From: Lepidodermella squamata
Taxonomy: Eukaryota > Animalia > Gastrotricha
Assembly (NCBI GenBank): GCA_047495785.1
Contig: JBLDXI010000020.1
Coordinates: 3,038,001-3,102,000 of the forward strand
Length of the DNA: 64,000 bases
Reading direction: 5' to 3'
Every line of letters starts with the position of its first letter. Position 1 is the first letter of the stretch. Of this stretch, positions 12,701-58,217 are shown in pieces. Under the pieces are notes generated by a model. It searched no databases, was not told the origin of the DNA, and saw only the letters and a program-made list of their open reading frames with translations. The position numbers were made by a program, and so were the translations under genes.

Positions 12701-12841
12701 AACATCGCTCCGGGTAAAATCGCGCCGGCTATGGGTGGCGTTTCTGCCTCGGAAAATGCGGCTGCGTGGCAGCAACAGCACCAGCAACACCACCCCGGCA
12801 TGATGAATGGCCTCGTTAAGCCTGAACAGTTGTTGTTCTAA
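9772..12841 (+). CDS. HEY: HEY-family bHLH-Orange repressor (exons 9772-9896, 9956-10022, 10081-10164, 11081-11162, 12108-12841)
   Basis: Spliced b[55 protein letters not shown] has Gly in the basic region, diagnostic of HEY. Orange domain [17 protein letters not shown]. Confidence 0.93.
10905..10911 (+). promoter_or_regulatory. Candidate CSL/Su(H) site GTGGGAA in HEY intron 3 (second site TGTGAGAA on minus strand at 11239-11246)
   Basis: Matches the CSL core consensus. HEY genes are established Notch targets. A 7-mer can occur by chance. Confidence 0.3.
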
Positions 12842-26300: not shown

Positions 26301-28768
26301 TATCAACGAATGTGCCGCTGCAACCAGTCCTTGCCCGACGAAATCGACGTGCTTCAACACCCCTGGCAGCTATTTCTGCACGTGTCAAGCCGGCACCTAC
26401 AACTCATCGAACACTTGCGTTGATTTTGACTGGTGCACTTATGGCACCTCGATTTGCCCGAGTGGTTCTACCTGTGTCAAGACCGCAGCTGGGAAGTTTA
26501 CCTGCACCTGCCCAAGCGGCTATACCTACGATGGAACTAACTGTGTTGGGCCTCGATCTTGCCAATCAACGACTTGTACTGACCCGGTCAGCCAAGTTTG
26601 TGTCGTGAATCCAACAACCCTAGCTGAGAGTTGCATTTGTAAGACCGGGTATACAACCTCGGGTAGTGGATGTACCGATGTTGATGAATGTTCTGTACTT
26701 GGATCAGTAGCTTGCCCAACCTCGGGCGGAGCCACATGCATAAATTTGCCTGGTTCTTACAAATGCGGATGCCCAGATGGCTACTACGAAGCTAATCCTG
26801 GCCAGTGCTTGAACATCAACGAGTGTCTCGACAGCACAAAATGCCCGACTGGCTCGATTTGCACTGATAAATTACCGCCAGAGAAATATTCATGCACATG
26901 CCCGACCGGTTATAACTTGAAAGGAAGCGCTTGTGTTCCGTTCGATATGTGTGCCGCTGGTTTATCAGCCTGTGCTCCAAGCACATCTGGCGGCCTTTGC
27001 ATCAGTGGGAACGGAACTTATACGTGCTCATGCGCGGCTGGTTATACTGGGGACGGGTTTTCGTGCTACGACGTTAATGAATGTGCCTTGGCTAAATCTC
27101 CATGCCCTCAAGGGTGCACAAACACCTATGGCTCGTATTCTTGCTTCTGTTACCCGGGCTACGTGTTGAACGGTCTCGGCCAATGTGAAGATCTGGACGA
27201 ATGCCAATTGATGCGCCACGATTGTGGTCAGGTTTGCAACAATGTCCCTGGAACTTACACTTGCTCGTGCCAGACTGGTTTCTCCCTTGATTCTGACGGG
27301 AAGACTTGCAAAGCGAATACTGCATGTCCAAGCGGAGCGGGCTGTTCCTCGCTATGCGCAATGGTCAACGGGATCGCGAAATGCTTCTGCAAGGACACGA
27401 CCAACTACTTCCTGGATACAGACGGAAAAACTTGCCGAAATGTGGACCTGTGTGCCAAGAAACCTTGCGTTGGCGATAATGCAGTTTGCGTCAACCTTGC
27501 CGGTGGTTTCAACTGCTCTTGCACCAACGGGTATAAGCAATCTCCGAACGGTTTGAAATGCGTCGATAGGGACGGTGCCTGGTCTAACTGGTCACCATGG
27601 TCAACTTGCACGAAGACCTGCGGCGGTGGCACTCAGTCGCAAAACAGGTCTTGCGATAGCCCATCGCCTATTGCAGCAGGCATGCCTTGCTCCGGCGCTT
27701 CCCAACAGTCTCAAGCATGTAACACTGACGTGTGTCCGAAATCGGATGCTGAAAAGAAATACGCTGTTGACTCATCGTGGAGTTTTACGAGCACGGAGAC
27801 TGTCAACCTGGTTAACATTTTCAACACTCAAGGAGATCAAGTCAGGAGTATTGTTGCTGATGGGGTCAACTCGAAATGCCGCAGTAGCCCTGCTACTTGC
27901 TGCGGAACAACTTCCGACTCAGCTTATTCGTAAGTCTGGTTTAAATAAAGTTTAATGATATTTTCATTCCGTATTTTACTTTCGCAGTGTCCCAAGTAAT
28001 GCAATGTTCACATCTTACGACCAAGTTGCTCTTGGCGGGTTTGTTCAGACCACGTCGACCTTCACATTCAGCACAGCTGTAGCGGCTTATAAGACCAACA
28101 AAGTTTGCACATCAGCAACGGTCCAGGCTCGAAAGAAGCGAGACTTTTTCACCTACAACGAGACCAGCCAAATTCCTCTACCGCAGAGCATGATGTCATC
28201 TGTGATGAACGACGCGACTGTTCAGCAGAAAATTGCTGATTGGCTTCTTTCGCAGTATAACGTGAAAATTACTTGGGCGACTACCACCACCCTACCGCCT
28301 GTCACGACTTCTCCGAACAGTGTTGTCACAGGAACTGCTCAAGCTTCTCAATCTAGTGGATTGCCTATTTGGGTGATCATTGTCATAGTCGTAGGCGCGG
28401 TTGTGGTCATTGCTGTAGTCATCGTGGTCGTAATTATTGTCATCAAGAAGAAGAAGCATAAGATTGCGGACGGCGGCGAATCGGCTACTCCTAAGAAGGT
28501 TTCAGCTCCTCCTGCAAAGAAGACCGAGCTAACAAAGAAACCTGAGCCGAAGAAAGCTGAACCAGCGAAGAAGGCAGAACCAGCCAAGAAAGAAGAGCCG
28601 AAGAAGGCTGAGCCGGCCAAGAAAGCCGAGCCAGCTAAGAAAGCCGACCCGCCAAAGAAGGAAGAGCCGAAGAAAGCGGAACCGGCGAAAAAAGGAGCAA
28701 AGAAAGATGAGGTCGAGGTGATTGACGAGATTGAATTAAAAAAGACAAACACAACAAAGAAAAAGTGA
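20338..28768 (+). CDS. Large type-I membrane glycoprotein, MUC4/SUSD2/Mesh-like: Thr-rich, EGF, TSP1, NIDO, AMOP, VWD, many Ca-EGF, TSP1, TM, KKAEP-repeat tail. Possible signal-peptide exon from 19497.
   Basis: DIDEC/C-x-NT-x-GSY-x-C repeats. WGNWTDWSQC and WSNWSPWSTC TSP1 motifs. VAPYWS (NIDO), CPP...CCYD (AMOP), GHVTTFDG and GLFGN-x-NG (VWD). TM IWVIIVIVVGAVVVIAVVIVVVIIVI. Confidence 0.85.
28537..28700 (+). repeat. Coding tandem repeat of KK(A/E)EP(A) units in the cytoplasmic tail
   Basis: About ten 5-6 aa units read directly in ORF 28004..28768. Confidence 0.9.
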
Positions 28769-32819: not shown

Positions 32820-35616
32820 ATGACCAGCTTTCTCCACTCGGCTGTCTGGTTGTTAATTGGGATAAACATAACCGTCTCGTACCCTATCAGTGAAATCTCC
32901 TCAACTCGTCAATGGGCTGTCTTACTTCAAGGTGGCGAAGCGGCAGCTAAGAAGCTAGCGCAAGAACTAGGCCTTGCGTACAAAATCCCGGTAGAATTTC
33001 TCTAGAAATCTTGACAAAACACTTTCTCATTCTCATTTTTTTCATTCTCAAGGTTGGTTCCATTCAAGATGTTTACATCCTCGAAGGAAAGTGGCCTGAA
33101 TTCCGGAAAGTTTCCGAATTCTCCCGGCCCATCAAGAAGAGAGAAGCGCTTACCCAGAGTAGAACCTGGGCCTCTGTGATAACTGATAAGCTCAAGCATC
33201 ATGATGGAGTGGCCTTCACCGAAATTCAAATCCCTCTTAAGAGGGTGAAAAGGGCGATAAGTCTCTACGACGATGATTCACTCTTCGACGACCCCCTGTG
33301 GCCCAAAACATGGTACTTGGTAAGTCCAGCCTCATCGATATCTCAACTACTTGAGAATTTTCAAACTTTGTAGAATAAAGCTCGAACGAGGTATGGATTC
33401 GATATGGATGTGCAGAACGCATGGGCAGCCGGTTATTCTGGGAAACAAGTCGTAATCACAATTTTAGACGACGGCATTGAGGGAAAACACGAAGATCTCG
33501 CGACGAATTTCGACGGAAGGGCTAGTTACGATGTCAACGATGGCGATGGTGACCCTACCCCTGCTTACGACCCCCTTGACAACAACAGGCATGGAACTCG
33601 ATGTGCTGGAGTAGCAGCTGCTATTGCCAATAACAGTCTTTGCTCAGTTGGGGTTGCCTATAATGCATTAATAGGAGGAATTAGGATGTTAGACGGGCAA
33701 ATTACTGATGTTGTCGAAGCTCAGTCTATATCTTTCAATCCCCAGCATATCGATATATACTCCGCTAGCTGGGGGCCGGATGACGATGGGAAAACTGTGG
33801 AAGGACCAGGAAAATTAGCTTCATTAGCATTTCAACGTGGGGTAAAGTTAGGAAGAGGTGGGAAAGGTAGTATCTACGTCTGGGCATCTGGAAACGGCGG
33901 AACCAATATCGATTCTTGTGCTTGTGATGGCTATGCAAGTTCGATTTACACAATTTCGATTAGCAGTACGACTGAGAATGGGCTCAAGCCGTGGTACCTG
34001 GAAGAATGCGCATCTACTCTTGCTACTACATACAGCTCTGGAAATCCTGGCTTTGAACGCCAGGTAGTGACTACCACGCTTCGAAACCGCTGCACTGATG
34101 CTTTCACTGGGACGTCGGCGTCCGCGCCCTTTGCAGCTGGGATGATTGCTCTGACTTTGGAGGCGAATCCAAATCTTACTTGGCGAGATGTTCAGCACAT
34201 AATTGTGGAGACCGCGAGACCTGAGCCGCTGATGGACGCTGGCTGGGTTCTTAATGGGTACGTTCAAAATGACAAAATTCCGGCATTAAATAATTCGAAC
34301 ATGTTTGAATAGTGTTGGCAGGAACGTAAGCACGAAGTATGGCTATGGTTTAATGTCGGGATTCGCCATGGTAAAACTTGCGGAGCGTTGGAAAACCGTC
34401 CCTGAATTACTGACGTGCAATGCATTTGTTTCGGGCGGGCCTTACGACTTGACAGACATCCCTAGTCTGAGTCTCCTGGCAACTGTCAGCGACTCTGCAT
34501 GCTCTGGTTTCCCCGTCGTTTACATCGAACACGTTCAAGTCGTTGTTTCATTAAATTACTCTCGAAGAGGTGATCTGAGCATTTACTTGACCTCTCCAGC
34601 CGGAACTAAATCTCAACTGCTACCTCCGAGATGGTTGGACAGGGAGCCGGGTGAATTCAAAGACTGGCCACTTACCTCCGTACAATTCTGGGGTGAACGG
34701 GTCGAAGGGGATTGGCTTTTGTTAATATCGAACGTGGGACAATCTAACTTCGGATCTTTAAGAAAGTGGCAGCTTGTTTTTCATGGAACTGAAACGGCAC
34801 CTGCTTCCTCAGCTCTGCCCAGAAAGGTTGTGAAAGTAACAACAACGGCGAAATCTGAGTCTTTCGAAACAACAACCCGGTTCATTTCAACATCAACGAC
34901 TCTCAAAACCACGGTGAGTATTTGTTGGTCTGCTGTTTGTTGGGCTAATTATTTTGAGCTTTTTGTAGAAATCATCCACGAAACCTGCTACAACTACAGC
35001 TTTCACCACTACCACCACAGTTCGAACGACTACTGACAAGTCTACTCCAACTATTCCCACAACTCGACTAACGACTAGGACATCAACTTCTCTGTCAACT
35101 GTAACTGTTACGCCAAGGAGGGTAACAACGACTCCTACTACGTCTCCCACAACACGTCGAGTAATTACAGTGCCAATGACATTTTACCCCAATAACACAT
35201 CGACTGCGAGAGCAACTGCGACTCGGAGGACTGCAACGACGCGCAAACTTACAACAGTTCCTATTTACACTCCTGAGCAGTGGCCTACCCGGCCTTTAAC
35301 CACCCCTAGTTTACCTTGGCAGCCCGTCGAAGCAAGAAATCAGTGGAGGTCGTTCGCCATGGTTCTGTACAACACCACAGTAATGCCGACAACAACCACC
35401 CCAACGACATCAGTTACTACCGAGGAACAAACTTCCCAAACTTATAGGACGAGAATTGTCACTGTTCCAACAGTAAAGTCCACCACGGCTTCTCCCAAAA
35501 CCGAGACAGGACTGATTTCTTCAGCTTACAATCCACAAGCGATGCAATTGTTGAAGTTTTCAGCCATCAACTATTTGCTGTTATTTTTGAAAAACAACAC
35601 CCTTCTTTACCTTTGA
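32820..35616 (+). CDS. Furin/PC5-like proprotein convertase with Thr-rich stalk (exons ~32820-32990, 33053-33320, 33373-34258, 34313-34913, 34969-35616)
   Basis: Propeptide site KRVKR. Catalytic LDDG, HGTRCAG, SGNGG and GTSASAP motifs. P-domain RRGDL. Thr-rich region and hydrophobic C-terminus. Confidence 0.92.
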
Positions 35617-35698: not shown

Positions 35699-38468
35699 TC
35701 AGAATTGTGTAATCGAGTGTCGTTTATGCATGTTCAGCACCATGAAAGAGCCATTTCCTTGAGCTATAAATTGAGAATTGCGTCTTGTTGGCTTGTGCAC
35801 AGCTGGCATAGCAGCCATAGAAGACTTAGGATCGATCATTGGCTCAATTGGCTTTGAAATTAGCTTGGGTATGAAAATATTAGCAAGATTTATCACAACG
35901 AAGGCGATTGCGCTAGACGCTATCGTAATTATCAAGCCGCGAGCATTTTGTGCGAAAATCAATCCTAATATGATGGTCGCGAAAGAAAGAATCAGTTTTC
36001 TATAAATACACCGGCACGACGCTTGAAAATCTGGAATATTTACGAATGATTGCTGAAAAATTAAAATTATCAATATTCCTAATATTACCATTCAAAAATA
36101 AATTACCGATCTGAGAACATATGCGAGGAAACTTTGACGGAGGATGTAGAGCTCTTCTAAAGCCGCGATCACAGCAAAGATAGTAAGAGGAACAGCAGAT
36201 ATTACTGGCTTGAAACTTGGCGAAGAGTATTGATAGAACAAGCTGATATCTGAGTGTGAGATCTCCAATCTTTCATACTGCCTATCCACCCGTATTGAAT
36301 CCACCAAGGCCCAAGCTATGATTAGCGCTGTAAGCAGGCCTATCCAAGACAGCATGAACTTGACAATATTACGCTCCACGATTTTGATAGGCAGGTTATT
36401 TCTTCTCGCCCGATGCTTTGATCTTTTCGCATTCGCGGGGGAGCTGATTTTAAATAAAATTGATCCTATTTCCATCTTGGCAGAGAGAGCAGCAAATACT
36501 ATCACAGCTCCGATGACGAGGAGCGATACGGACGCTTTGAAGTATGGCAAAGCTACTTTAGGGTCAGCTTGTGTAGGCAAAATAATTAGATGACTTGAAA
36601 TGACGCAATTCCCAAACAAAATCGTGCTGTTCAGCGCCATATGAAAGCCTTGGCTAAATGGAACAATCGGCCGCAATAACTGATCAAGCAAAAGCAAAAA
36701 ACTAGTAATGATGAGTACGATGGCGATCGAAACCAAGATGTAATACTCGTAAGACACTAATAACGGGACGAGGATTTCTTGAATTACCATAGAATCTGAA
36801 TGAGGTCGACCGCTGTTGGTCCGCCAGGTTATCTGTGCTGGGCCAAGTTGGAAACCAGTCAGATTATTAGCGTCTGCATACGCGACGATTTTCATTACGA
36901 GCTGACCATTGGTCGAAAGCTGATTTTGAAGCATTGCGATCGGTGTATATCCTCGGGTGTTGTCCATAGTCGACTCTTCATACTGGTAATCTCCAAAAAG
37001 CCCTTCTGATCTGAACGTGTACAATGTCTTGCGCAACAAATCTCTGACGAAACTGCCATTTTTGCGAAAATTCACGGAATTCGTGAACCAGTCGGATAGC
37101 TTCTCACCACCTGAGGAAAGCAATCAGCTCTCTTATGTAAGAATATGGGAAATTCTTACTTTTACGCAGATATGCTTCTGTTAAGTTGAGCCACCGAGCA
37201 GCCATCATCGTTTGCTCGTAACATAGGAGACGGAGGCCCCAAATCGACGGATTAACCGGGCTTGTCGCTCTCGCTAACATCAACTCGTCGAATTGTCTCT
37301 GAGTCATGCCAGAAAAATCTGCCACTTCTGCACTTGAAACTTGGCCTTTTGAAACGGGGCCAATGAAAAAAGTGCTGAGCAAAACCTGAGGAACAAATGA
37401 TTGAACATTCTTCAAGGGATTTCGAAATTATACTTCTTTCAACATGTCTGATGTGCACCATGGGTATCTCAGTGGGGTATTTGGCTGATAACCGCCAAGT
37501 AACGGAGAAATAATCGTGATCGCCGGCCCAAACAATCCGTATCGATGCAGAAAACAAGCAACCAGAGACTGTGTGCCTGATACGGTTACAATAACCCTGG
37601 GTCGAACTGACGCCAAATCCATAACAGCTGATTCTACATCAGATTCTTTCGGCAAACTAGCCCCGACAGATTCCGTGGGATACTTGAACATCCCAATAAG
37701 GAAGGTCACGTTTATTAGGTCCATCTCAGCCAATAGAGCGGTCTCAACCAAATTCCAGATAGGGTACAGCTCTGAGAGCATAGCGATTTTCCGCCAGCCC
37801 ATTTTTGCGATGAAGTGAGCTGCCAGTCTTGCTTGCGATATCGGAGGAGCGATCATCACAAATAGAGAATTGTAGGCCTTTCTATTCATCTGCACATGAG
37901 CTGTATTAGCTGCAGTGGTGATCTTCGGATTATATTGAGGTTTAATTAATAAATACGATGCCTGCATTTTACGACATACCCCTAAGACGTCGTAGTAGGG
38001 CAGGAAAAGTCCAGTGAACTGGTTGCCAGTCGACATGGGTCCCAGCACTAGGGGCAATCGATTAGGTGCCTGTGTTAACTGCTCCAATTTTTCGATGACC
38101 ATAGCAACTTGTACAGGAACCAATGTCTTAAAATTTGTTAATAAGGATTAAGGATTCATCAATTAGAAAATGTCAATAGATACTTTGTCATCAATCAGCT
38201 CAATTTCAAGCTGGTAATCCCGAAGGAGCCCAGCTTTCTCCACTTGAGCCAAAGCAATCTCGGTTGCCTTGGTGCATACCCTACCCATTGGATAAACAGT
38301 AGAATTGTAATAGATGAAAGCCAGTAGCGAGAGCTTTGTGCGATTGCCAGAATTTGTGCTATTCAACTGCTCCGAAAACACCTTCGCCGGCATCGGTGGC
38401 ATCCAATAATCTGACATCGCACGCACGATGTGGATAAAGACGACTGAAGTAAATATTAAATTTTTCAT
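35699..38468 (-). CDS. Divergent class C GPCR-like receptor (exons 38184-38468, 37980-38126, 37434-37922, 37160-37385, 36107-37110, 35699-36052)
   Basis: Signal peptide, GLLRDYQLEIELIDD, GWRKIAML, FRSEGLFGDYQY, seven hydrophobic helices, and TM7 FIPK motif. Confidence 0.78.
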
Positions 38469-38872: not shown

Positions 38873-39370
38873 ATGCTCATCCTAAGTATATTTATGCTGG
38901 CTAAGCTAACGCTAGGAATGAAAGCTGCCGTTGTCCAACCATGCATTTTGTCAACTCTGCCGCTAAATCAGCCTGATTCCGAAAGCACTGATATTATCGA
39001 CACAAACCACAGAAATCTTTGTCAAGTAAACGCTGAAGAAGCTGCGAGTATCAGCCGGGAGAGACTATGTCCAAACGTCGTTTGGAGATGGCGGTACAGC
39101 TACGAAGACAAAATTTGCATTAGATTCATGTATCACGGATGTGAGGAATGTAAGTTTTGAGATGATAATAGCCAGTGTTTCAAGAAATCATTTTTTTCAG
39201 TTCTGAAAAATGCTTTTATGTCTAAAGAGGATTGCGAAACTGAATGTGGAGCTCCACCGCTACAACAAGACGCTTTCGTTGACGCTCTATCTAACTCCAG
39301 TCCCGCCAAACACCTGCCGTTTCTGTCACTGACCATAGCAATCTCTTTATTCTCAGGATTTTTCAAATAA
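38873..39370 (+). CDS. Single Kunitz/BPTI-domain protein, probably GPI-anchored (exons 38873-39149, 39201-39370)
   Basis: C..C....RWRY.....C.RF.YHGC....NAF.SKEDCETEC. Signal peptide and hydrophobic tail LPFLSLTIAISLFSGFFK after SNSS. Confidence 0.8.
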
Positions 39371-39388
39371 ATAATGCTTATTTCTTTG

Positions 39389-40042
39389 TCAGTAGTGTGG
39401 GGCGATTGCAGCTCCTTGCCCTTCCCATCTGGCTGCGTTTTGGGGGTCAAGATAAATGTTAGGTACATCAATTCGATTTTGATGAGCCATCATTGGCGGA
39501 GGCATTCCGTGATATGACATAACCGGTGTCAACGACGCAAGTTTTTTCCTCTGATAGTATCGGTAGGCCCCATAGCACAGGAAACAACCAATAACAGCGA
39601 AGAAGATGAGCGCGATAATCCCGACCTCAGCACCCGTCAGTTGCAGACTTACTTCAGTCGACAAAGCTTGAGACCCGCAAGCCGAATCAACGGGTATGAC
39701 AATGACGGTATAGACTTGCAGGTTCCCGACAAAGTTGTAGGTGTTTTGCGTAACAGTTGCATTTTCGACGTCCATGTTCGAGCTTGATTTCGCACAGCGG
39801 TAACATTTTCTCCCACATTTGACTCTCTTAGCACATGATTCGTGGGAGATGGATATTAGAGTCAAGGAATTCCCGCCGTCCCAGTTGCAAGACAACCGAC
39901 GTTCTGAGCTGAAAATACCGCTAATTTGCTCGCAATTCAGGTAAGTAAAGCTTGAGCAGTCGCTTGAAGGAATTATTGTTGATATATTTTGACCATAAGC
40001 CACTTGGATGAAAGATAAAATTAAAACTAGTCTGCAGCACAT
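39389..40042 (-). CDS. Array member A: Cys-rich type-I membrane protein (intronless)
   Basis: Signal peptide, IFS-x-x-R-x-L-x-C-x-W, ISHE-x-C-x-K-x-x-x-CG-x-x-C-x-x-C, LTGAEVGII TM, Pro/Tyr tail. Confidence 0.85.
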   Translation of the reverse strand: MCCRLVLILSFIQVAYGQNISTIIPSSDCSSFTYLNCEQISGIFSSERRLSCNWDGGNSLTLISISHESCAKRVKCGRKCYRCAKSSSNMDVENATVTQNTYNFVGNLQVYTVIVIPVDSACGSQALSTEVSLQLTGAEVGIIALIFFAVIGCFLCYGAYRYYQRKKLASLTPVMSYHGMPPPMMAHQNRIDVPNIYLDPQNAARWEGQGAAIAPHY

Positions 40043-40247
40043 TCAAAACATCTTTTACTGAACTTTGGAGCTGAATGTTGATGGAAATTGTTTTTATTAT
40101 TTTTTAGAATCGCCAGGATACGGCAAAAGCTGATAAAGAATTCATGCACACGAGCAGCACTAATGGCTCTAAGATCAATAATAAGAGTATTCCGGGTATT
40201 TTTTGACAGTGCCAACGGAGTCGAAGAAGATACCAACGTTACAACCT

Positions 40248-40978
40248 TTAATGGGGATAGTAATTAGGATTGACTTGAGGACCAGCACCATAATTAGGCG
40301 GAGGAGGGTAGGATTGCATCAGTGGAGGAGCAGGGTTGTAAACAGTACTGTACGTAGCAGTTTTGTAGCGACCAGCAAAGCAGCACCAGCCGTGGCGTAG
40401 AGCACAACAGAGGGAGATGCCAATACAGCTGCCGAGCACAACCGCCACGATCGTAACAATAATCGCGACTTCAGCCGGGGTAAGGTCAGCACTTGCAATG
40501 GTTTGCATCATTTGGGCGGGCTCATTGGGGCACTTGTTATTGCGGCGGTAGAGGTAAACCTGGTCATTACACATGCTACACAACAAATTTTATAATTTAA
40601 TAATCAACGAACCGAGTAACTTTCCAATGGACCGCTGAATTCGAAATATTGGCCAGTGGAGATAGTCCGGTTTCGAATATCAGTCACAGTTTCATACAAC
40701 ACGCATTTCTTGCAGTTCTTGCCACAATTCACTTGCTTGACACATTTATCATGTGTTACCGTAAATGTGTAGTTCACATGAGACGAGTTAGAGTCGAAGT
40801 CTTCCTCTCTCCAGCTACAGCCGATGACTCGATCAACGCTGAAAATCGCGTTCGAACCAGATTTGCATTGGAAATCGCTGAATGTTGCTGAGTAACATTG
40901 AGCGGTCGTAGTGGTGTTAGCGGCTTCTATAGCCGCTAGCATCCCGAAAAATAAAGCCAGTAACATGAATTGAGTCAT
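40248..40978 (-). CDS. Array member B (exons 40613-40978, 40248-40559)
   Basis: Same Cys pattern. LTPAEVAII TM, then CC..CC cluster and a PPNY (PPxY) motif. Confidence 0.85.
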
Positions 40979-41485
40979 GTTCGAAAGCAAATGTATGGTC
41001 CTTCGCAGGGGGTTTACGAAAATTCTAATTTTCAATATCCAGCATGCGGGAGAGGATTCGAAATCAAACCAAGAAATTAAGAAATACGTTTAACTAGGAT
41101 TATTACCTGTTTTCTGTCGCGACTCTGGTATAAATGATCCGGCACCAGCTTATCGTATTAGGAATACGGAAGCGCGGGTAGGCCAGCTGTTTAACCATAG
41201 TTTACGCCGAGAAAATCGATGCATGTTAGTTCTGCCATCTTTATGCTGTTTTTTCATTTTTTGCACCGATCCATGCTTTAATTCTATGCTAAACTGTTAT
41301 TTGCTCAGCAATGCGTGGGATGATGACTGATATCTAGCCTTACAACAATAGATGAATGGACTCGTCAAAACAAATGAGTGAAATTGACAACTTCAGCCTG
41401 CACACAAAAAACTAAGGCTTGTTTATTGGTCAGATTCTCTTAAAAATAATCACAAGTTCAATATTGCGCCAAATGAGTCATTCAT

Positions 41486-42308
41486 TCAGTGAGCAGTAAA
41501 CTGTTCATAGGGTCTACCTTGTTGATGTGACGCCGGTTGGTAAGCCGCATTATTATTGCTCCAGCCAATAGTTTGCTGCTGAACCTGCGGTGGAGGGTTG
41601 ACGTAGTAAGGTGCCGTCGAGTTGGGTTGAGGCGGCGGCGGCACATAAATTTGAGCCATGGGTTGCCCGCCGATTGATGAAAAGACGGGTTGAGGCGGTG
41701 GCCTATTCCGGCCACAGCAAATACAAGCGATGGTTATTCCGCCAATAATTAAAATTATGACAATTATGATGGCCGCGATTACCCCTCCCTCGGCAGCAGT
41801 GAGTCCAGCATCAACCGAGGTCGAAAGGGATTGTGTGAAATTCTCGCAAGTACGTGTAATAGTGATCTGAAGAGAGAGAATAATGAAAGTTTTCGGAAAT
41901 AACTCAAAATAATTATTTTACAAAATATATTTCTGCTGATCCGATGTATTTGAAATAAGTTTGATTGGTTACGGTGTTTGTCACATCGTTTGCGTTTGCG
42001 TACTCGACGCATTTATCGCAATTTCTCCCGCATGAGATTCGCCGCTTACACTCTTGATGAGAAATCGAGATGAGGTACTGCAGCTGCTTCGGCGGAGGGC
42101 TTGTATCAGTCCATCTGCATTCGACCTTCCGTGGGACACTGAAAATTGGGTTATCTGAGTCACACGAAGCTGCTCCGAAGTTGGTAGAGTACGAACATAT
42201 CGCCGGACGAGATGGCACTGTTGTTGTATTAGCAATGATAGTACGATTATCTGCGGCCCAGTTCATCTCGATAGCCAAGCTGAATAGAATAGTCAGAGAT
42301 CTCAGCAT
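41486..42308 (-). CDS. Array member C (exons 41922-42308, 41486-41866)
   Basis: Exon 2 translated by hand: ITITRTCENF...LTAAEGGVIAAIIIV...CICC, then a Pro/Gln/Tyr-rich tail. This frame is missing from the ORF track. Confidence 0.85.
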
Positions 42309-42676
42309 TCTTCGGGCGTTGCACAGGGAGGATGGAAATTTTTTGATTTGCAGCAGCTATAGACCAAACTATATTCTTTGATGCTAAGCTTGATGTGGCT
42401 ACGTTGGAAAACTGGCAACGAGCCCATTCATTATTCATGAGTTAAACTTCACCGCATCATGCGAGTTTCGATATTTTCCGCTGTGTACTGCGCTGCGAAA
42501 TCGATTGTAATTTTTCCTCTACACACGTACCCCTACCTGCCTCGATATCGATTATTCTCAGCTTATTGTGCTACTTTTTCCCACATTACGAGAGTGCAGA
42601 AATTCAAAACTGCCCATGGAAGATATTTATTAAAAATCAGGTTTGTAATACAAAAATATTACTACAATTCAGTCTT

Positions 42677-43433
42677 TCATTTCTTCGAAATCGTATTATC
42701 AGTAGGTGAGACAGAGTTTTGCGTAACAGCCGCTTGCTGATTTTCGGGTGTTGCCATAACCCCAAACTGAAACGCAGGATTGTAAGCTCCATCGTAAATC
42801 TTCTGTTGCTCGATTGGGATCATTGGAAAAGTTTTCTTTGGGGCGAAGCAGCAGACTTTCTTGGAGCCACAGATAATTACAGGCGTGATTACGAGGATAA
42901 GAAACACGGCAATTATTGCTCCAATTATTCCCCATTCAGTGGGTGTCAACCGAGCGTTGACTTCGTACGTTGCCGATGACACAAAATTATCGCATACTCT
43001 AAGAACAGTTACCTAGAAAGTCACGGGATAGCCATACTTTAGCAGATATTTCATAATTTCCCAAAAAGCTCACCTGATAAACTTTCGCTGAACCACCGTA
43101 TTTGAAATAATTGCCCTGAATCGTCTCGTTCAGGACATCGTAAGTAGTGTTGGAAGCTACGCACTGGACGCAGTTTTTCCCGCAGCCACGTTGCTTTGTG
43201 CACACCTGGTGCGAAACTGATATTTTGTAGGTAAGATTTGGGCTCTTATCGCCATCATCAGTCCAGCTACATTCCACACTCCTTGTAATACTAAAAATCG
43301 GATTTTCGGATTTGCAAGAAAGACCTCCATCAGCATCAAAAGCTGAAGATAAGCTGCAATCTTGGCCGTGAATCGTTACAAGCCCAGCCCCGAAAAGTAG
43401 CAGTGCAACACTTTCCAGTAAAAATAGTTGCAT
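42677..43433 (-). CDS. Array member D (exons 43074-43433, 42677-43012)
   Basis: CKSENPIFS..VECSW..CGKNCVQC; exon 2 VTVLRVCDNF..LTPTEWGII. Confidence 0.87.
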
Positions 43434-44463
43434 AATTTGAAGGCAGATGTTCTAAAGAATTGCAATAGCACAAATATACGCTTTTGTAGCGCTGAGGTTT
43501 TGCCTTGGAGCTATTTGAGCGCTTTGTGGAAACCTTTTCGTTCCCAGAAGAACGAACTGAGTGTTCGCTCGAAATCCCTCGCTAGAAAACGAAGAGTTTT
43601 CAGGCGCGATTGAGACGAGAGAGAACGCGTTGAAAAACTGCGAAGTGGTTAGATGGAAGCGTTATCTTCATCTTACTAAAGTTACTAAATTCTACAGAAT
43701 TTGCACAGATAAACTTAAAGATATTAGCAGCAAGCCATACCTGCGCTAAGGATCCTCGCATATCAGGGCTATAGCTGGCAATTATTTTCGTGTGGTGTTT
43801 AAAGCATAGCAATTTTCATTCAACAAATCTTTGGCTGGTAATGAACGAAATTCTATACAACTTTTCTATTGAGTATTATTTCACTGTTGAATACCTAGAA
43901 CCTTCTATACCAAATGTACAAAAAATCATTAATGAACGACCCTAGCGGAAATTTCATAGCTACAGCGGTTCATTAAGACTGTTTTCAAGGCTCATCACTC
44001 CGAACAGCCACAATGCATCATACAGGATAGCCTTAGGCCTTAGTAGCCCATCATTATGGAGAATTATGGCCCAGTAAGAAGTAATTATGACACAGATAAA
44101 AAGAAAATCATAATGCATAAGGAAATCATAAGGAACGCACCTTTCAGCAAGTAAAGCCTCTAATTTGACTTGAAGTTTTGTTTCTGATATATTTCAAAGG
44201 TGGGGACATATCCGGGGACATATCCGATATCCGGGACCTTTGGGACAATCCGAGCCCCAGGACACTCCTAGGCATCTCCAACAGCCGGCATATGGGTCAA
44301 CAGGCTATGACGAAATGATCACTTTATCGAACAAATCTATGCATCTGGGTAATTCGATGAAAATATATTTTTCACACGTCATGCAAGTGCGGAATTTGAA
44401 AACTGCTCCTTGGAGATATTTATTAAAAATCACGATTACGATAAACGATTAGCCTTCTGTCTT

Positions 44464-45184
44464 TCATTCCTTCGGCATTGTTTTTTCAACGGGCGAGACA
44501 GAGTTTTGCGAAACAACCGCTTGCTGATTGGCTGGTGGTGTTATAACCGTGAACTCATTCGCAGGTTGTTGCTGCGTTTCAGGATTCCTCGTCCCGAAGC
44601 CGCATGCTCCGATGCAGAAGCAAACGATTATAGGAATGATGATGATCAGAATGAACACAATAACAAGTGCCGCGATAAGAACTCCTTCACCGGCTGTCAA
44701 CCCAGCATCGGCTTCGTCCGTTGCTAATGTCGTAAAATTATCGCATACTCTAAGAAGGTATACCTAAAAAATCACGGGATAGCCATATATTTGAACAAAA
44801 TTATCCACAGATAAAGCTCACCTGATATTTTTGAGCTGAACCATCATCGTATTTGTAGTAATTGCCTTGAATTGTCTGGTTCGCGACATCGTAAGTAGTG
44901 TCAGAAGATACGCACTGGCGGCAATATTTTCCACAGGAAACTTGCGTTGTGCACACCTCATGCGAGACTGATATCTTGTAAATAATTTTCGGGTTCTTCG
45001 CGGCATCGTCTGTCCAGTTGCATTCCACCTTCCTTTTAATACTAAAAACAGTGTTTTCGGATTTGCAAGAAATTCGTCCATCAACACCAAAGGCTGATGG
45101 TGAGCTGCAATCTTGGCCGTGAATCGATGGAAGGCCAGCTCCGAAAAGCAGGAGGGCAAGATATTCCCACATAAATAGTTGCAT
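44464..45184 (-). CDS. Array member E (exons 44822-45184, 44464-44763)
   Basis: CKSENTVFS..VECNW..CGKYCRQC; exon 2 VYLLRVCDNF..LTAGEGVL. Confidence 0.87.
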
Positions 45185-47470
45185 AATTAAAAGGCAGATT
45201 TTCTTAACAATTTCATAAGGAAACATAATTTTTATGGGGCCGAAGCTGGAAACTTGTTTATTTCCAGTTATTAAATTGAATTCAAACATTTTTTACGGGT
45301 TGGCAAGCCAAATAGCTTGTTACCTATTTCATTTTCTATCTGCTCGAGGGACGTGTTCAGTTTCGCCAAATTACATTGTAATTTTCCAACGAGTGGCGAG
45401 CACATATTATAAGAATATGTGTTCATTTCAGCTGGTGACTGAAGATAGGACTGAAGCTGCCCTCTTCTGGGCGTTAAAGCTTATAAATAAATAAATAAAT
45501 AAATAAATAGGAGGATGGATGTAAGCCGCCCACCAACATATTAAAATCGCTCAACAATATACAATATACAAGAATTAAAAGTCCTTTTACGAAGAGAAAA
45601 CAAAGAATTCTCTGGTGCGATTGAAAAGAGAGAGAAAGCGTTGAAACGCTGCGAAATGGTTGGATGGAAGCATTATTCTTTCCTTATCTTGATTCCTAAA
45701 TTCTACGAAATTTGTCTACGGTAGTTAACGTAAAGCTACCACCAGCAAGCTAAACTACCGCTAAGGAACTTCGTAAACCAGGCTTAGCTGGAAATGAAAC
45801 GATTACTTTCGCGTAGTGTTGAAAGCAAACAGCAATTTTCATTAAACACATTTTAGGTGGGATAAATAGTGAATAAAGTTCTATACATACATATATAGAG
45901 GTGCGCACAAACAGTCCTTTCATTGTGTTTAACGCACAACGTTGCACGGCATTATATCTTATTACTATAGGTTATTTTTGAGCGTTAACAAACTCAGGTT
46001 TTTCAATTGTATTAAACCAATATTTTAAACAGATTTTTGGCAGGGACAAACAACTTTAAAATAAATAGTAATAAGAAGAAAAAATGTCACGGCGCTGAAT
46101 CACTGCTTTCTTACCTACTAAAAATAATTTCCAAGCCTGCAAGTGAATACCTCTTATATTTCCTTGAATACGTTTGGACTCTATATATGTGGGACATTCT
46201 ATGCGTATAATGCAAAAAAGCATCAACAGATTCATTTGAGCAAAAACATGTTCATACATATTAGAAAGTTTGCTTTCAACACCACGCGAAAAAGCGTGTC
46301 ATGTGGCGTATAATATGTGAAAAGACACAGGCCTGGGCCGATTTTTTGCCTGAGCCTCGAAACACGAATATTCAAGAATTGAGCCCGCGTCCACATGTAC
46401 GTCACATGACTATAAGGTATACCGCGCGATGAGAAAGCACTAATGCCGTAGCTCCAGGAGTGTGCATAAACATGGTCATTTCAATGTACTTAGAGCAAAA
46501 ATAACGTTGCATGGCATTATTTTTATTATTACCATGATGTCATTTTTAAGTGTTCGCAAACTCAAATGTTTTTGTATTTTTTGTTCACCAATGTTTTAAG
46601 GAGATGTTTGGTGGAAACAAGAAAATCTAGGCAGGTTAACAGCAGGTATCGAACCCAAATCGCCATGAATGTGGGGGCAGCTTATTTATGAATAATCCAC
46701 GATCGCACATTCGTTTTCAGAAATATTGCGGCATCGTCCTGAAGGCTGTCTACGACGCGAAGCGAGTAGACGGGGCTGTAAAATAGGGTTGCCTAGTCGA
46801 CTCTCTGCCGACTCGCTATATTTGGAAGTTGGAGTTTTGCATGATACTTGAAGCAAAAAACTTAATCGCGTCTTCTTCGACTTGTCTCTAGCCTAAGCAA
46901 ATATTTATTCGACGAGATGTGCGCACGGATTAATCTTTGACGCCTTCGTTGAACAGCGCATAGTAATGCCAAAATTGCGTCTAATGGTAAAGATCCAAAA
47001 ATAGGGCAGCATGCAGAAATAGGTACATGCTGAATTTTTGTATTCGAGGTAAATGAGATGACAGTAGGCCAAAAATCAGCTGGTTTCACCGCCACAGCGA
47101 AAAGTTTTGACTTTCAGATTTTTCTTGAGAAGCAATTTTGCCGTCACAATGCAGGAATTTATTATGAAGAAGACTGGTTACAACTGATAAGGATTCAAAT
47201 CCAATTTTTGAGTGCCTCTTAGGCAATTGTTAAATTTCATCAAAGGTATTCGGTCCATTCAAATGGCGCTTGAAATTCATTTCTTCTCTGTTAACTCACC
47301 GTCCGGGGTCTAGTTCGACTGCTCATGGTGGACGGCTGACTTCATTAGTGTAATCAGCTTTTGCTCTTATTCACACGTCATGCCATTGCGAAATTTGAAA
47401 ACTGAGATATTTATTGAGATATTTATTGAAAATTACTAATACAATATAAATTCAAGTACCATCCAGTCTC

Positions 47471-48216
47471 TCATTTCTTCGAAATCGTATTATCAGTGGG
47501 CGAGACAGAGTTTAGCGGAACGGCCGCTTGCTGATTGGCTGCTGTTGCCATTACCGCGAACTGATTTGCAGGATTGAAAACTCCACGGTACATCTGTTGT
47601 TGCTCGAATGGGATCACTGGAAAGGTTTTCTTCGGGGCGAAGCAGCAGCTTTTCTTACAGCAGCATATGATTGTAGGAGTGAGCATGAGGAGAACGAACG
47701 CAACAATTATTGCTCCGATTATGCCTCCTTCAGCGGCTGTCACACCAGCGTTAACTTCCACCGTTGCTGATGATGTAAAATTTTCGCATACTCTAAGAAC
47801 AGTAACCTACAAGACCCTTTTCCAAGAATGATTATTTCGCAATGGAAACCCACCTGATATACTTGCGCTGATCCATCGTATTTGTAATAATTGCCTTGAA
47901 TTGTCTCGTTGAGGACATCGTAAGCAGAACTAGAAGATGCGCATTTCCAGCAGTTTTTACCGCAGGTGAGTTTCTTGGAACACACCTGGTGCGAGACTGA
48001 TACCTTGTATACAACTTTCGGACTCTTCAGTGCATCGTCGGTCCAGCTACATTCCACCTTTCTTGAGATACTGAAAATAGGGTTTTCGGATTTGCAAGAA
48101 AGACCTCCGCCAGCATCAAAGGATGAGGATGTGCTGCATTCTTGGCCTTGATTTGTTGTAACGCAAAGGCCAAGAACTATTAGCAGTGCGAGGTTTCCCA
48201 ATAGAAATATGTGCAT
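47471..48216 (-). CDS. Array member F (exons 47854-48216, 47471-47806)
   Basis: CKSENPIFS..VECSW..CGKNCWKC; VTAAEGGII TM; CCCKKSCC cluster. Confidence 0.87.
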
Positions 48217-48661
48217 AATTAAAAGGAAAATTCTTTCAAGAAGTGTAACAGAACATCAGCGCAAATTTTGGGGTGCTGAATGTGAAACTTGAGTCCAATA
48301 AGCGATTCTGAGCAAACTTTCACTCTTCCAGGAATTGAAAAATTAAATTGAATGTAAACCTTCTTTTTAACGATATTCGAGCTTGAAATTGCCTTGGAAT
48401 ATCGCGAATCAATACTTCGCCACTTCGAAACTCTGCACGTGGCTACAAATTAGAATACTATTTTTGCGCAGTGTCGAAAGCAAAACATAAATTTTTGGCT
48501 GGAATCAATAATGTAAAAAATAGATATCCTTTCCATCATCTTAAAAACCTTCCATGAACACTTGAGAGTTTACTATACAGATTACAAAAATAAAGATTGA
48601 AATATGTTGTTTAAGATTAATGTAGTAGTGTAATATAAAATCCACAAATATCGCTTGTAAT

Positions 48662-49397
48662 TCATTTCTTCTCCGTTTCCTCAGCAGGTGAGACCGAGTT
48701 CGACCGCTGAGGGTGGACGGCTGATGTCATAGCCATGTACTGCGGGGCTGGGTTGAAAACGCCGTGATACATCTGCTGCTGCCCGAATGGAATCATTGGA
48801 AACGGCTTCCTTGGTCTGAAGCAGCATGTCTTTGTGCAACAGCAGAGCAGAATAGATCCTAGAATTAGCAATATGAAGCCGCCGAAAATGCCTCCGATAA
48901 TGCCTCCTTCGACTGACGTCAGCCCTGCATCCACCTCTGCTGTTATCACTTGTGTGATATTTCCGCAGATACGATTTACTGTAACCTAAAAGTTGGAGAT
49001 AAATATAATCCCTTCGGATTTAATTGGAGCAAATGGTTACTTGGTATAACGCTGACGACCCAACATACTTGTAGTAGCTTCCAGTCACGGTTTCATTGGC
49101 GACGTCGTAAGCGTTGGCAAACAGTGTGCATTTCGAACATTTTCGTCCGCAGGATGTTCTTTTCTGGCACTCTTGATGCGTGATTGAGATCGTGTAGGAG
49201 ACCGCTGAGTTTTTAACTGCGTCAGCCATCCAACTACATTCCACTTGCCTCTGGGTACTGAAAATAGGATTCTCTGATTTGCATGTGAGCCCGGCGTCGT
49301 CAAATGCCGAAGAATAGTAACATATGTCAGATGCTACTACTGCAAAGCTCACCGCGAAAACGAATAGCGCAAAAACCTTGCAGGGTGGCGATTCCAT
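48662..49397 (-). CDS. Array member G (exons 49041-49397, 48662-48985)
   Basis: CKSENPIFS..VECSW..CGRKCSKC; LTSVEGGII TM; CCCTKTCC cluster. Confidence 0.87.
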
Positions 49398-51120: not shown

Positions 51121-51907
51121 TCAGACCGCAGTATGGCAAAGCGGGCAATGAACGCAACGGCGAATATCTTGTTCGTAAGCTCGGTGTTTGCAGGTGCCGC
51201 AGACCCAGAACTGGAAATGGTACAGCGGGCGGCCGGAGACAACGCAAACGGGGAATTTTGCGAAACAGCTCGGGCAGCTCGTTGACCAGTCCGGAATTTG
51301 AGCGTCGCAGCTCGGGCAAGCTGCCATAGTAGCTCGCGTGTCTTTCGGCGGGCGACGGACGAAAATTTCAACGGCTAATTCTTCGATTTGTTGCTTATTT
51401 GCCGTAGGCAGCTGGTCGGGGCCGAGAGACTCGAGCCGCAAAAATGCTGCAGAGCAACTGCCATAATTTCGGCTAGCTGCAGCACACAATGCTAAAAAAA
51501 ATAGGCATTAAAATATTTCAATTTCTTTTTGAATTAGCAATTAATTAAAATGTTTGTCAACTAGAAATATTTAAATTTTAAATTTTAATTTTAAAATAAG
51601 AAAATATTATAATTTTTCCATTTTCGACAGAAAATTCCAGTAAAATCAATTCTAGACGCTAGGGCTGCTTACCAACTAGGCTGTAGAGTCTGAATGATCC
51701 AATGAAGTCTTCGTAGTCTCGAAGCAACAAAGCTGTTCGGTGGGCCGCATCGTAATCGCCTTTGTAAAGGTGCCGATGGGCTAAAATCATGAAATGATAC
51801 GCTTCAGCGCCTCGCCACGCGTTATCGATTAACCGCGCATCACCGCCGACTCCGGAAGCCGCCACAGCTGCATCCTCAGCCAATAAACCAGCCAGCGACA
51901 GCGTGGG
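51121..51907 (-). CDS. WDR35: Last two exons of WDR35/IFT121 (51673-51907, 51121-51491); upstream exons not in window
   Basis: LAGLLAED...DNAWRGAEAYHF, YGSCSAAFLRLE and C-terminal zinc fingers FPVCVVSGRPL...CPLCH. Confidence 0.93.
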
Positions 51908-55363: not shown

Positions 55364-56084
55364 TCTGACATATCCATCGCAAATTAAATTTCAATTAAAT
55401 ATTCAACGAAATTATCAAAACAGTTTCCAGCGCCTTCCGGGAATCGGACGCGTCTCTATATAATTTATTCACTATATAATTCGCTACGCAGTGGTTCGGA
55501 AGGCAGTGGTTCGATTGCTGCTCACATCACATTTTTCCTTCTCATTTTTTCTTCTTAAAATCAGATTTATTTCTGTTTAATTTTTTTGCAGAGTGAGCAA
55601 TAAAAAATAAACGTTTACCATTCACGTGAATCTTCATGAGTACAAAGTGCATGCCTGTCATATGGCCGACACGCGATTCAGCATCAGCTGTTTCACGGCG
55701 CAGCGGCGGCAACAGCAAGCAGACGGTTCGATCCGGTATTCAACCATCATTCACAACGATTTATTTCTCTTCAAAACAACCTCTATTTCCCTAATCATTA
55801 GAATTACTTATGCTGCCAGCTCCTATCAATCTATCTTCCGCTCGAATCGATAACATTGTGACAATGTTGCTCTCTCAGGTTTGCTAGTATATTATTCCCA
55901 GTTCATATCACCATTCCCACTATAATTACAGCTACTGGATGAAATGGCGATTTCAACACTGTTGTCCACTTTGGTTTTCCATGGTCACTACTCCCTACCA
56001 GAAAGCGGTGAGTACATTATTTTCCTCATTCATTTTTTTTACTATTGTAAAATTTATTGATTTTTTCATTCATTAACACGTTTT

Positions 56085-58217
56085 TTTTGCTCCCCAATAT
56101 TTTCTTTCGTCGTTATGCTCCCGTATTCGACGTTTTCGCCATCAGCAACGTCGATTCCACTAATTCATGTCATTTAATTTTACCCTGATTTACTTTTTTC
56201 AAGAATTTTTTCAAACTTTGAAATTCCAAACCAAGGTCGTAGGTTGGTGCCCGACCTCTCATTTTTTCGCCCTCAAATATTTTCTTTCATCGATATGCTC
56301 CCGTTCTCGACGTTTTCGCCATCAGCAACGTCGATTCCACTAATTCATGTCAATTAATTTTACCCTGATTTACTTTTTTCAAGAATTTTTTCAAACTTTG
56401 AAATTCCAAACCAAGGTCGTAGGTTGGTGCCCGACCTCTCATTTTTTCGCCCTCAAATATTTTCTTTCATCGATATGCTCCCGTTCTCGACGTTTTCGCC
56501 ATCAGCAACGTCGATTCCACTAATTCATGTCAATTAATTTTACCCTGATTTACTTTTTTCAAGAATTTTTTCAAACTTTGAAATTCCAAACCAAGGTCGT
56601 AGGTTGGTGCCCGACCTCTCATTTTTTCGCCCTCAAATATTTTCTTTCATCGATATGCTCCCGTTCTCGACGTTTTCGCCATCAGCAACGTCGATTCCAC
56701 TAATTCATGTCAATTAATTTTACCCTGATTTACTTTTTTCAAGAATTTTTTCAAACTTTGAAATTCCAAACCAAGGTCGTAGGTTGGTGCCCGACCTCTC
56801 ATTTTTTCGCCCTCAAATATTTTCTTTCATCGATATGCTCCCGTTCTCGACGTTTTCGCCATCAGCAACGTCGATTCCACTAATTCATGTCAATTAATTT
56901 TACCCTGATTTACTTTTTTCAAGAATTTTTTCAAACTTTGAAATTCCAAACCAAGGTCGTAGGTTGGTGCCCGACCTCTCATTTTTTCGCCCTCAAATAT
57001 TTTCTTTCATCGATATGCTCCCGTTCTCGACGTTTTCGCCATCAGCAACGTCGATTCCACTAATTCATGTCAATTAATTTTACCCTGATTTACTTTTTTC
57101 AAGAATTTTTTCTAACTTTGAAATTCCAAACCAAGGTCGTAGGTTGGTGCCCGACCTCTCATTTTTTCGCCCTCAAATATTTTCTTTCATCGATATGCTC
57201 CCGTTCTCGACGTTTTCGCCATCAGCAACGTCGATTCCACTAATTCATGTCAATTAATTTTACCCTGATTTACTTTTTTCAAGAATTTTTTCAAACTTTG
57301 AAATTCCAAACCAAGGTCGTAGGTTGGTGCCCGACCTCTCATTTTTTCGCCCTCAAATATTTTCTTTCATCGATATGCTCCCGTTCTCGACGTTTTCGCC
57401 ATCAGCAACGTCGATTCCACTAATTCATGTCAATTAATTTTACCCTGATTAACTTTTTTCAAGAATTTTTTCAAACTTTGAAATCCCAAACCAAGGTCGT
57501 AGGTTGGTGCCCGACCTCTCATTTTTTCGCCCTCAAATATTTTCTTTCATCGATATGCTCCCGTTCTCGACGTTTTCGCCATCAGCAACGTCGATTCCAC
57601 TAATTCATGTCAATTAATTTTACCCTGATTTACTTTTTTCAAGAATTTTTTCAAACTTTGAAATTCCAAACCAAGGTCGTAGGTTGGTGCCCGACCTCTC
57701 ATTTTTTCGCCCTCAAATATTTTCTTTCATCGATATGCTCCCGTTCTCGACGTTTTCGCCATCAGCAACGTCGATTCCACTAATTCATGTAAATTAATTC
57801 TACCCTGATTTACTTTTTTCAAGAATTTTTTCAAACTTTGAAATCCCAAACCAAGGTCGTAGGTTGGTGCCCGACCTCTCATTTTTTCGCCCTCAAATAT
57901 TTTCTTTCATCGATATGCTCCCGTTCTCGACGTTTTCGCCATCAGCAACGTCGATTCCACTAATTCATGTCAATTAATTTTACCCTGATTTACTTTTTTC
58001 AAGAATTTTTTCAAACTTTGAAATCCCAAACCAAGGTCGTAGGTTGGTGCCCGACCTCTCATTTTTTCGCCCTCAAATATTTTCTTTCATCGATATGCTC
58101 CCGTTCTCGAAGTTTTCGCCATCAGCAACGTCGATTCCACTAATTCATGTCAATTAATTTTACCCTGATTTACTTTTTTCAAGAATTTTTTCAAACTTTG
58201 AAATTCCAAACGAAGGT
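56085..58217. repeat. Tandem array of ~12 near-identical 180-bp units
   Basis: TAATTCATGT recurs at 56161, 56341 ... 58141 with an exact 180-nt period. Only scattered substitutions. Confidence 0.98.

Follow-up and report, generated by a model that had tools for sequence, protein, structure and literature searches.

What do seven small, similar genes encode that stand one behind another in the genome of the gastrotrich Lepidodermella squamata, and what could their products do? The genes occupy positions 39389-49397 of a 64,000-nucleotide stretch of contig JBLDXI010000020.1 (positions 3,038,001 to 3,102,000; assembly GCA_047495785.1), which is the whole of the DNA analyzed and is hereafter called the window; they are labeled g1 to g7 by rising coordinate. 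Splicing and expression are shown for at least four of them (g2 to g5), purifying selection acts on the copies amenable to testing, and the products form an apparently undescribed sequence family. We judge it moderately probable that the array is an expressed gene family restricted to its lineage, whose products are small type I membrane glycoproteins with a single fibronectin type III (FN3) domain and serve as small receptors or co-receptors.

Layout and transcripts of the array

The list of open reading frames (ORFs) for the interval contains one complete ORF (g1) and six pairs of exon 1 and exon 2 ORFs. Together with splice reconstruction, it gives seven intact, co-oriented paralogues on the minus strand.

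g1, 39389..40042, minus strand: single exon, 217 amino acids; the most divergent copy and the sole intronless one
g2, 40248..40978, minus strand: exon 1 40978-40613, intron of 53 nucleotides, exon 2 40559-40248; 225 amino acids
g3, 41486..42308, minus strand: exon 1 42308-41922, intron of 55 nucleotides, exon 2 41866-41486; 255 amino acids
g4, 42677..43433, minus strand: exon 1 43433-43074, intron of 61 nucleotides, exon 2 43012-42677; 231 amino acids
g5, 44464..45184, minus strand: exon 1 45184-44822, intron of 58 nucleotides, exon 2 44763-44464; 220 amino acids
g6, 47471..48216, minus strand: exon 1 48216-47854, intron of 47 nucleotides, exon 2 47806-47471; 232 amino acids
g7, 48662..49397, minus strand: exon 1 49397-49041, intron of 55 nucleotides, exon 2 48985-48662; 226 amino acids

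Each of g2 to g7 carries one GT-AG intron in phase 0, 47 to 61 nucleotides long, at the identical site between Y-x and V/I-x-V/I, and the intergenic spacers measure 205 to 2286 nucleotides. A search of the whole window with the seven proteins (tblastn) found no locus beyond g1 to g7. An earlier note on this DNA, made without database searches, had counted seven co-oriented paralogues of about 215-260 amino acids, all with intact frames despite their divergence; the lengths listed above and the splice reconstruction agree with it on both points.

Pairwise protein identity among the copies ranges from 29 to 70%, the highest value being that of g4 and g6, and the resemblance across the array lies far beyond chance because E-values between copies fall to 1e-80 (tblastn) and the DNA units of g4, g5, and g6 are 70-76% identical across approximately 850 nucleotides, intron included. 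In the tree, g4, g5, and g6 are grouped (support 92/99) and g7 comes next, g1, g2, and g3 forming long branches that diverge deep in the tree; the array is an old one with one later duplication burst. As for the missing intron of g1, we infer intron loss, which is the simpler explanation because g1 stands in register and in orientation within the array, 205 nucleotides from g2; retroposition was rejected on the same grounds. A non-coding block of approximately 290 nucleotides lies upstream of both g4 and g5 (43584-43859 and 45595-45887; copies 72.6% identical) and may represent a promoter or 5' region common to both that was copied when the genes duplicated.

Expression was examined by comparing two public sequencing runs with the window, one of cDNA (X1) and one of DNA (X2). 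X1 was recognized as a cDNA library because the loose ends borne by its contigs are the SMART cDNA oligo. Placement of contigs covered one 6-kb stretch containing g1 to g5, and g6 and g7 were assessed by their share of words in X1 only. Three predicted introns are skipped exactly by X1 contigs: that of g2 (53 nucleotides, 40556/40610, CT..AC on the plus strand with the cut moved by +3), that of g4 (61 nucleotides, 43010/43072, CT..AC with the cut moved by +2, 0 mismatches), and that of g5 (58 nucleotides, 44761/44820, CT..AC likewise with +2, 0 mismatches), the last two also read on the plus strand. For g3, the X1 contig stops at 41922 and continues in a loose end that is the first 11 nucleotides of exon 2. 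The DNA run spans the same places without these splice joints. Spliced transcripts, whose absence the earlier note had named as grounds for dropping its reading, are thus present for the introns of g2, g4, and g5 and for the junction of g3. X1 also contains 0.43 of the sampled words from the g6-g7 stretch 47471-49397, and so at least part of g6/g7 is present in the cDNA assembly.

Two further observations concern g4 and g5. The X1 contig of g5 reaches at least 106 nucleotides upstream of the homologous start codon (45185-45289), and includes an ATG at 45289, in the same frame, from which the protein would be 35 residues longer ahead of its signal peptide. An X2 contig joins 43028 to 44845, skipping 1816 nucleotides from the g4 intron to g5 exon 1, with 29 nucleotides on its shorter side; such a joint may reflect an allele with a g5/g4 fusion or deletion, or else a misassembly between paralogues.

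Protein anatomy, selection, and predicted fold

All copies have a hydrophobic N-terminal signal peptide, an ectodomain of approximately 120 residues, one transmembrane helix, and a tail. Eight ectodomain Cys residues, seven encoded by exon 1 and the eighth by exon 2, are kept in all seven copies, and the alignment of the exon 1 ectodomains has 18 invariant residues. The invariant ectodomain positions include F-S..R...C-x-W, H..C-x5-CG-x2-C-x2-C, D..N, and G....Y, and the T..E ahead of the transmembrane helix is invariant as well, within an entry of the form (L/V)-T-x-x-E. Each ectodomain has two to four N-x-S/T sites, and one sequon position (DV-x-N-x-T) is kept in six of the seven copies, g3 having N-T-V there. 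The 17-residue H..C...C segment is net basic, with 2-6 Lys or Arg residues versus 0-2 Asp or Glu residues. The first half of the transmembrane helix is rich in small residues (e.g., GGIIGAII) and, together with the entry, is among the better conserved parts; two to five Cys residues follow at the cytoplasmic end of the helix. The signal peptide, the eight-Cys ectodomain, the transmembrane start, the juxtamembrane Cys residues, and the divergent tails had all been described in the earlier note, and the alignment of the seven copies confirmed them.

The tails comprise 51-77 residues and are rich in Pro, Gln, Tyr, and Asn. That of g2 contains PPNY and NPNY, and (Y/F)NPA is common to g2, g4, g6, and g7. 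F-P-x-I-P occurs near the membrane in g4, g6, and g7 only, 13-20 residues after the transmembrane helix, and NSVSP occurs near the C-terminus of g4, g5, g6, and g7. YxxPhi is found in five of the seven tails (all except g4 and g5). The FPxIP and YNPA blocks have disappeared from the g5 tail; the Pro-rich tails of g1 and g3 are peculiar to these copies, that of g3 being long and rich in Pro and Gln, and poly-Pro runs are carried by g2 and g3.

Selection was assessed from ratios of non-synonymous to synonymous substitution rates (dN/dS) and from polymorphisms between the window and the two runs. The ectodomains of g4, g5, and g6 gave dN/dS values of 0.27-0.52 at dS 0.4-0.6; in older pairs dS is saturated, yet all frames are intact. 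Pairwise dN/dS was below 1 apart from the g5/g6 tail (1.08), and strong diversifying selection across the family was rejected on this basis. Polymorphisms in g2 and g3 comprised eight synonymous and two non-synonymous changes, five of the six in g3 being synonymous. In g1, eight were synonymous and 10 non-synonymous; changes in the structural core were all synonymous, and the replacements fell in the N-terminal segment and in the final 15 codons. Variation among the copies is concentrated in the BC loop (with indels), the N-terminus, the hairpin tip, and the FG loop, and conservation is highest in strands A, B, E, and F. The suggestion in the earlier note of a diversified recognition system is not supported, dN/dS being on average below 1, though the variation clusters in loops.

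The region of g1 (39300-40060) also differs from X2 by approximately 21 positions per approximately 730 nucleotides (about 3%), versus about 0.6% over g2 and g3, and at 39818-39941 X2 has two alternative contigs of 124 nucleotides, one without differences and the other with 7. This suggests either a pair of divergent haplotypes or an additional, collapsed copy.

The fold was predicted with AlphaFold2 for the whole g1 ectodomain (residues 18-143), with the six exon 1 pieces as alignment rows. The model has seven strands, with a mean predicted local distance difference test score of 74.9 and a predicted template modeling score of 0.66. Compared with the structures in the Protein Data Bank (PDB), it matched 47 of 48,161 representatives at Z≥8, and nearly all of the best 50 listed were FN3 domains, with a typical root-mean-square deviation (rmsd) of 2.5-3.2 Å over 81-90 residues. 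The Z-scores were 9.9 for the FNIII domain of lambda gpJ, 9.0 for gp130, 9.0 for CD45 d3-d4, 8.9 for fibronectin, 8.8 for ROS1/Sevenless, and 8.7 each for IL-20R2 and tenascin. A second-look alignment of the Foldseek top 1000 gave 110 matches at Z≥8, again FN3 domains; Foldseek itself assigned a probability of about 1 to FN3 domains and growth-hormone receptor, with weak E-values (5e-3), and in a shape search of the ESM Atlas, FN3 domains, along with phage FNIII domains, were matched with TM-scores of 0.58-0.64.

The C-C' hairpin is over-long, at 17 and 18 residues; it contains the four central Cys residues, and its tip reads C-G-(K/R)-x-C. The invariant Trp of C-x-W lies in predicted strand B, and the invariant Tyr starts predicted strand F and is followed by V/I-x-V/I/L. 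Since a strand-B Trp and a strand-F Y-x-hydrophobic-x-hydrophobic are classical FN3 core positions, their presence strengthens the case for this fold. The evidence points with moderate strength to an ectodomain that forms one FN3-type sandwich of seven strands (A, B, E / C, C', F, G). The earlier note had proposed an FN3- or cytokine-receptor-like sandwich with an inserted basic Cys hairpin: the FN3 domain and the hairpin reappear in the g1 model, with the four-Cys segment in C-C', whereas the matches are those of generic FN3 domains and do not single out cytokine receptors.

Sequence searches brought up no relative. Transmembrane and tail parts gave nothing meaningful in Pfam at E≤10, the best match being WBP-1 (E=0.1, g5). 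A 94-position profile of the seven exon 1 ectodomains had 0 matches among PDB sequences at E≤10 and, searched exhaustively against 1.84 billion protein representatives, 0 at E≤1e-3. Word-indexed protein searches with full-length g1 and with g6 exon 1 found no match, self included; an exact look-up of g1 among public assemblies found no record, a full-text literature search no relevant paper, and a comparison of the window with Rfam no match. The searched protein libraries are without this genome's own copies, so that relatives are excluded for well-sampled groups and not for unsampled sister taxa. That the earlier note recognized no named family is in keeping with the Pfam, PDB-sequence, and 1.84-billion-protein searches.

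Possible mode of action and competing explanations

For the way in which such receptors or co-receptors may work, the FN3 fold and its bracing by four disulfides are predicted, and we infer the disulfide pairing, palmitoylation, oligomerization, and tail partners. After cleavage of the signal peptide, the whole extracellular part would fold as one FN3-like sandwich. Of the four disulfides bracing it, the first would join strand A to strand B, two would lie inside the C-C' hairpin, and the fourth would tether the N-terminal segment to the FG loop. Other FN3 binders usually bind with the end that carries the BC and FG loops; here the BC loop, the FG loop, the hairpin tip, and the N-terminus would make up the recognition surface, and the loops and the basic hairpin would bind a ligand or partner. 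The T-x-x-E motif and the small-xxx-small half of the transmembrane helix would mediate lateral association, either with itself or with a partner protein, and the membrane-proximal Cys cluster would be palmitoylated. The tail has no enzymatic domain, and its linear motifs may recruit trafficking, endocytosis, or adaptor proteins; candidates are PPxY, NPxY, (Y/F)NPA, YxxPhi, FPxIP, and NSVSP.

In architecture, the closest known design is that of FNDC4 and FNDC5 (irisin precursor), type I membrane proteins of small size whose ectodomain is one FN3 domain. The likeness, which is one of architecture only, extends to the signal peptide, the single FN3 domain, the one transmembrane helix, the short non-enzymatic tail, and the length of approximately 210-250 residues. 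The family described here differs in its eight Cys residues, its over-long basic C-C' hairpin, its juxtamembrane Cys cluster, and its seven-fold tandem expansion, and shows no sign of a shed, hormone-like product. On the sequence side there was no Pfam fn3 match and no protein at E≤1e-3 in the 1.84-billion-protein search, with no direct comparison to FNDC4/5 made. The FN3 domains of large receptors (gp130 D4-6, CD45 d3-4, ROS1/Sevenless, DCC/neogenin, and integrin beta4) and of lambda gpJ are similar in shape (Z 8.3-9.9, rmsd 1.9-3.6 Å over 76-106 residues), but they are modules of large multi-domain proteins, share 6-20% identity, and in no case have the eight-Cys pattern.

Several results weigh against the single-FN3 receptor explanation. 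The seven exon 1 ORFs and full-length g1 found no match in Pfam at E≤1, fn3 included. The Z-scores of 8-10 are barely above the best Z of 7-8 that is usual for models without a clear match, and the fold-level evidence is for this reason of moderate strength. The model is built on seven sequences, and its C-terminal third is unaligned and derives from g1 alone, because MAFFT misplaced the rows of exon 2 fragments and those alignments were discarded. A model of g6 exon 1 only reached Z≤4, with Foldseek E>0.3; it was set aside in favor of the whole-ectodomain g1 model, as it lacks the G strand altogether and the greater part of the F strand. The tail motifs are short and do not occur in every copy, g5 being without most of them and g1 having different ones. 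For g1 itself, the X1 contig is thin (depth 2-6.5) and oddly joined, and the tail has five non-synonymous polymorphisms within 12 codons. Finally, because the libraries lack the genome's own copies, a lineage-restricted family is inseparable from one whose sister taxa are unsampled.

If the explanation holds, the array represents a previously unrecorded sequence family with a fold of known kind, and illustrates that an FN3 domain can drift away from all profiles and yet keep its fold, here with eight Cys residues and an extended basic hairpin. It would also add a compact, expressed, seven-gene receptor-like array to this genome. Invertebrate genomes commonly contain orphan tandem families of small surface proteins, and the array alone opens no long-standing question. 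In practical terms it has a modest yet real value: the genes are short, the ectodomain is expected to be easy to express, and the motif differences between paralogues (PPxY only in g2; FPxIP only in g4, g6, and g7) are ready hypotheses for partner screens.

Among the other explanations, the one that survives best, although we consider it unlikely, is that the proteins are auxiliary or escort subunits that bind multi-pass receptors or channels via the transmembrane segment and tune their trafficking or gating, as RAMPs, Shisa/CKAMP, and FXYD proteins do. The invariant T and E, the GGIIGAII-type spacing of small residues in the first half of the helix, the palmitoylatable Cys cluster, and a tail without a catalytic domain would all fit such a role, and the flanks hold family-C-receptor-like genes, including an ORF with an ANF_receptor domain at 2157-4502. 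This nearest ANF_receptor ORF is, however, 35 kb away, and the adjacent gene at 35699-38468 has no Pfam match. A disulfide-rich, glycosylated ectodomain of 120 residues with variable loops suits ligand binding at least equally well.

A second alternative, to which we give a small chance, is that the family is a strongly diverged relative of domain 1 (D1) of class I cytokine receptors, consisting of "mini" receptors in which FPxIP acts as a box-1-like kinase-docking motif. Language-model features were searched with exon 1 of g6 and of g3, which are 38% identical, and both gave the same top cluster, IL2RB_N1/IL3Rb_N/IL4Ra_N (score 0.90; 184 of 256 features shared for g6 and 183 for g3); nine of the ten best named matches were cytokine-receptor families. 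The recognition scores of 2212 and 2050 nevertheless fell below the 2300 mark, and the g1 ectodomain, searched in the same way, yielded no usable match. Growth-hormone receptor chains recur in the best Foldseek rows, but the structural matches are to generic FN3 domains tied within one Z unit, and the match to EpoR is to its second domain (D2; residues 121-224) rather than to D1. No Pfam cytokine-receptor family (EpoR_lig-bind, IL2RB_N1, and others) was found at E≤1.

The arrangement of motifs is similarly divided. Like D1 of the IL2RB_N1, IL3Rb_N, IL4Ra_N, and EpoR_lig-bind type, the ectodomain is a Cys-bearing N-terminal FN3 domain directly after the signal peptide with C...C-x-W in strands A and B, and its C-x14/15-C-x-W recalls the C-x9-C-x-W of the receptors; the Cys spacing is, however, off by five to six residues, and there are four extra Cys residues and no similarity at the level of hidden Markov models. 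The single domain of approximately 120 residues fills the ectodomain from signal peptide to transmembrane helix and leaves no second domain, and WSxWS is absent from all seven copies (regular-expression search). F-P-x-I-P lies 13-20 residues past the helix in g4, g6, and g7, where it may correspond to box 1, the Pro-rich, membrane-near motif on which JAK kinases dock; the last Pro is missing, and g1, g2, g3, and g5 have no such motif. That the array is a non-chordate radiation of one-domain, D1-like mini receptors with a box-1-like FPxIP is, in our estimate, improbable to a slightly greater degree; if true, it would mean independent or very early-branching signaling of the helical-cytokine type outside the known Domeless/CRLF3 set.

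We regard as still more doubtful that the proteins are transmembrane adaptors with PY motifs, of the Shisa/WBP1/VOPP1 (STMC6-like) kind, which recruit NEDD4-type WW ligases to down-regulate surface proteins. In layout they agree, being small and single-pass with a Cys-bearing ectodomain and a tail rich in Pro and Tyr; the PPNY of g2 is canonical, poly-Pro runs occur in g2 and g3, and the Pfam match of g5 was to WBP-1. That match (PF11669) reached at best 13.7 bits against a threshold of 28.1 bits and covered the transmembrane helix only, in g5 only, and PPxY is present in one of the seven tails. Shisa was not matched in Pfam by the exon 1 parts, full-length g1, or the transmembrane and tail parts. 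In place of a Cys knot of approximately 50 residues, the ectodomain is a predicted beta-sandwich of approximately 120 residues, lacking the CC doublets characteristic of Shisa. The family is not a member of Shisa/WBP1, and the resemblance to these adaptors that the earlier note had seen is reduced to general layout.

That the genes are non-functional, as decaying duplicates or chance ORFs, is hardly credible: g1 is barely covered by cDNA and has the cluster of tail replacements mentioned above, but the seven frames are intact despite saturated dS in most pairs, dN/dS is below 1, exact spliced cDNA contradicts non-functionality for g2 to g5, and the 18 invariant exon 1 residues and the eight Cys residues are kept in every copy.

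Neighboring genes

The array is flanked by genes on the same strand on both sides, and other recognizable features are distributed across the window as follows.

2157-4502, plus strand: uninterrupted ORF of 781 amino acids with an ANF_receptor ligand-binding region (E 1.3e-13)
5767-6687: ankyrin-repeat protein
12086-12841: Hairy-orange domain
15910-16578: PTPLA dehydratase
25720-27933: large EGF_CA/TSP1 protein
33404-34312: subtilase S8, probably a proprotein convertase
35699-38468, minus strand: gene adjoining the array, with ORFs of 343, 231, 130, and 101 amino acids; no Pfam match at E≤0.1
51121-51883, minus strand: C-terminal exons of an IFT121/WDR35 homologue (TPR_IFT121 and second zinc finger), on the upstream side of the array

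The ANF_receptor ORF had no protein match at E≤1e-10 in the word-indexed library and, judged by this, is a very divergent family-C-receptor-like gene. The gene content and the introns of approximately 50-60 nucleotides indicate a compact invertebrate genome. Outside the array, the interval 56001-58000 shows strong strand asymmetry, with a GC skew of -0.33 and an AT skew of -0.25.

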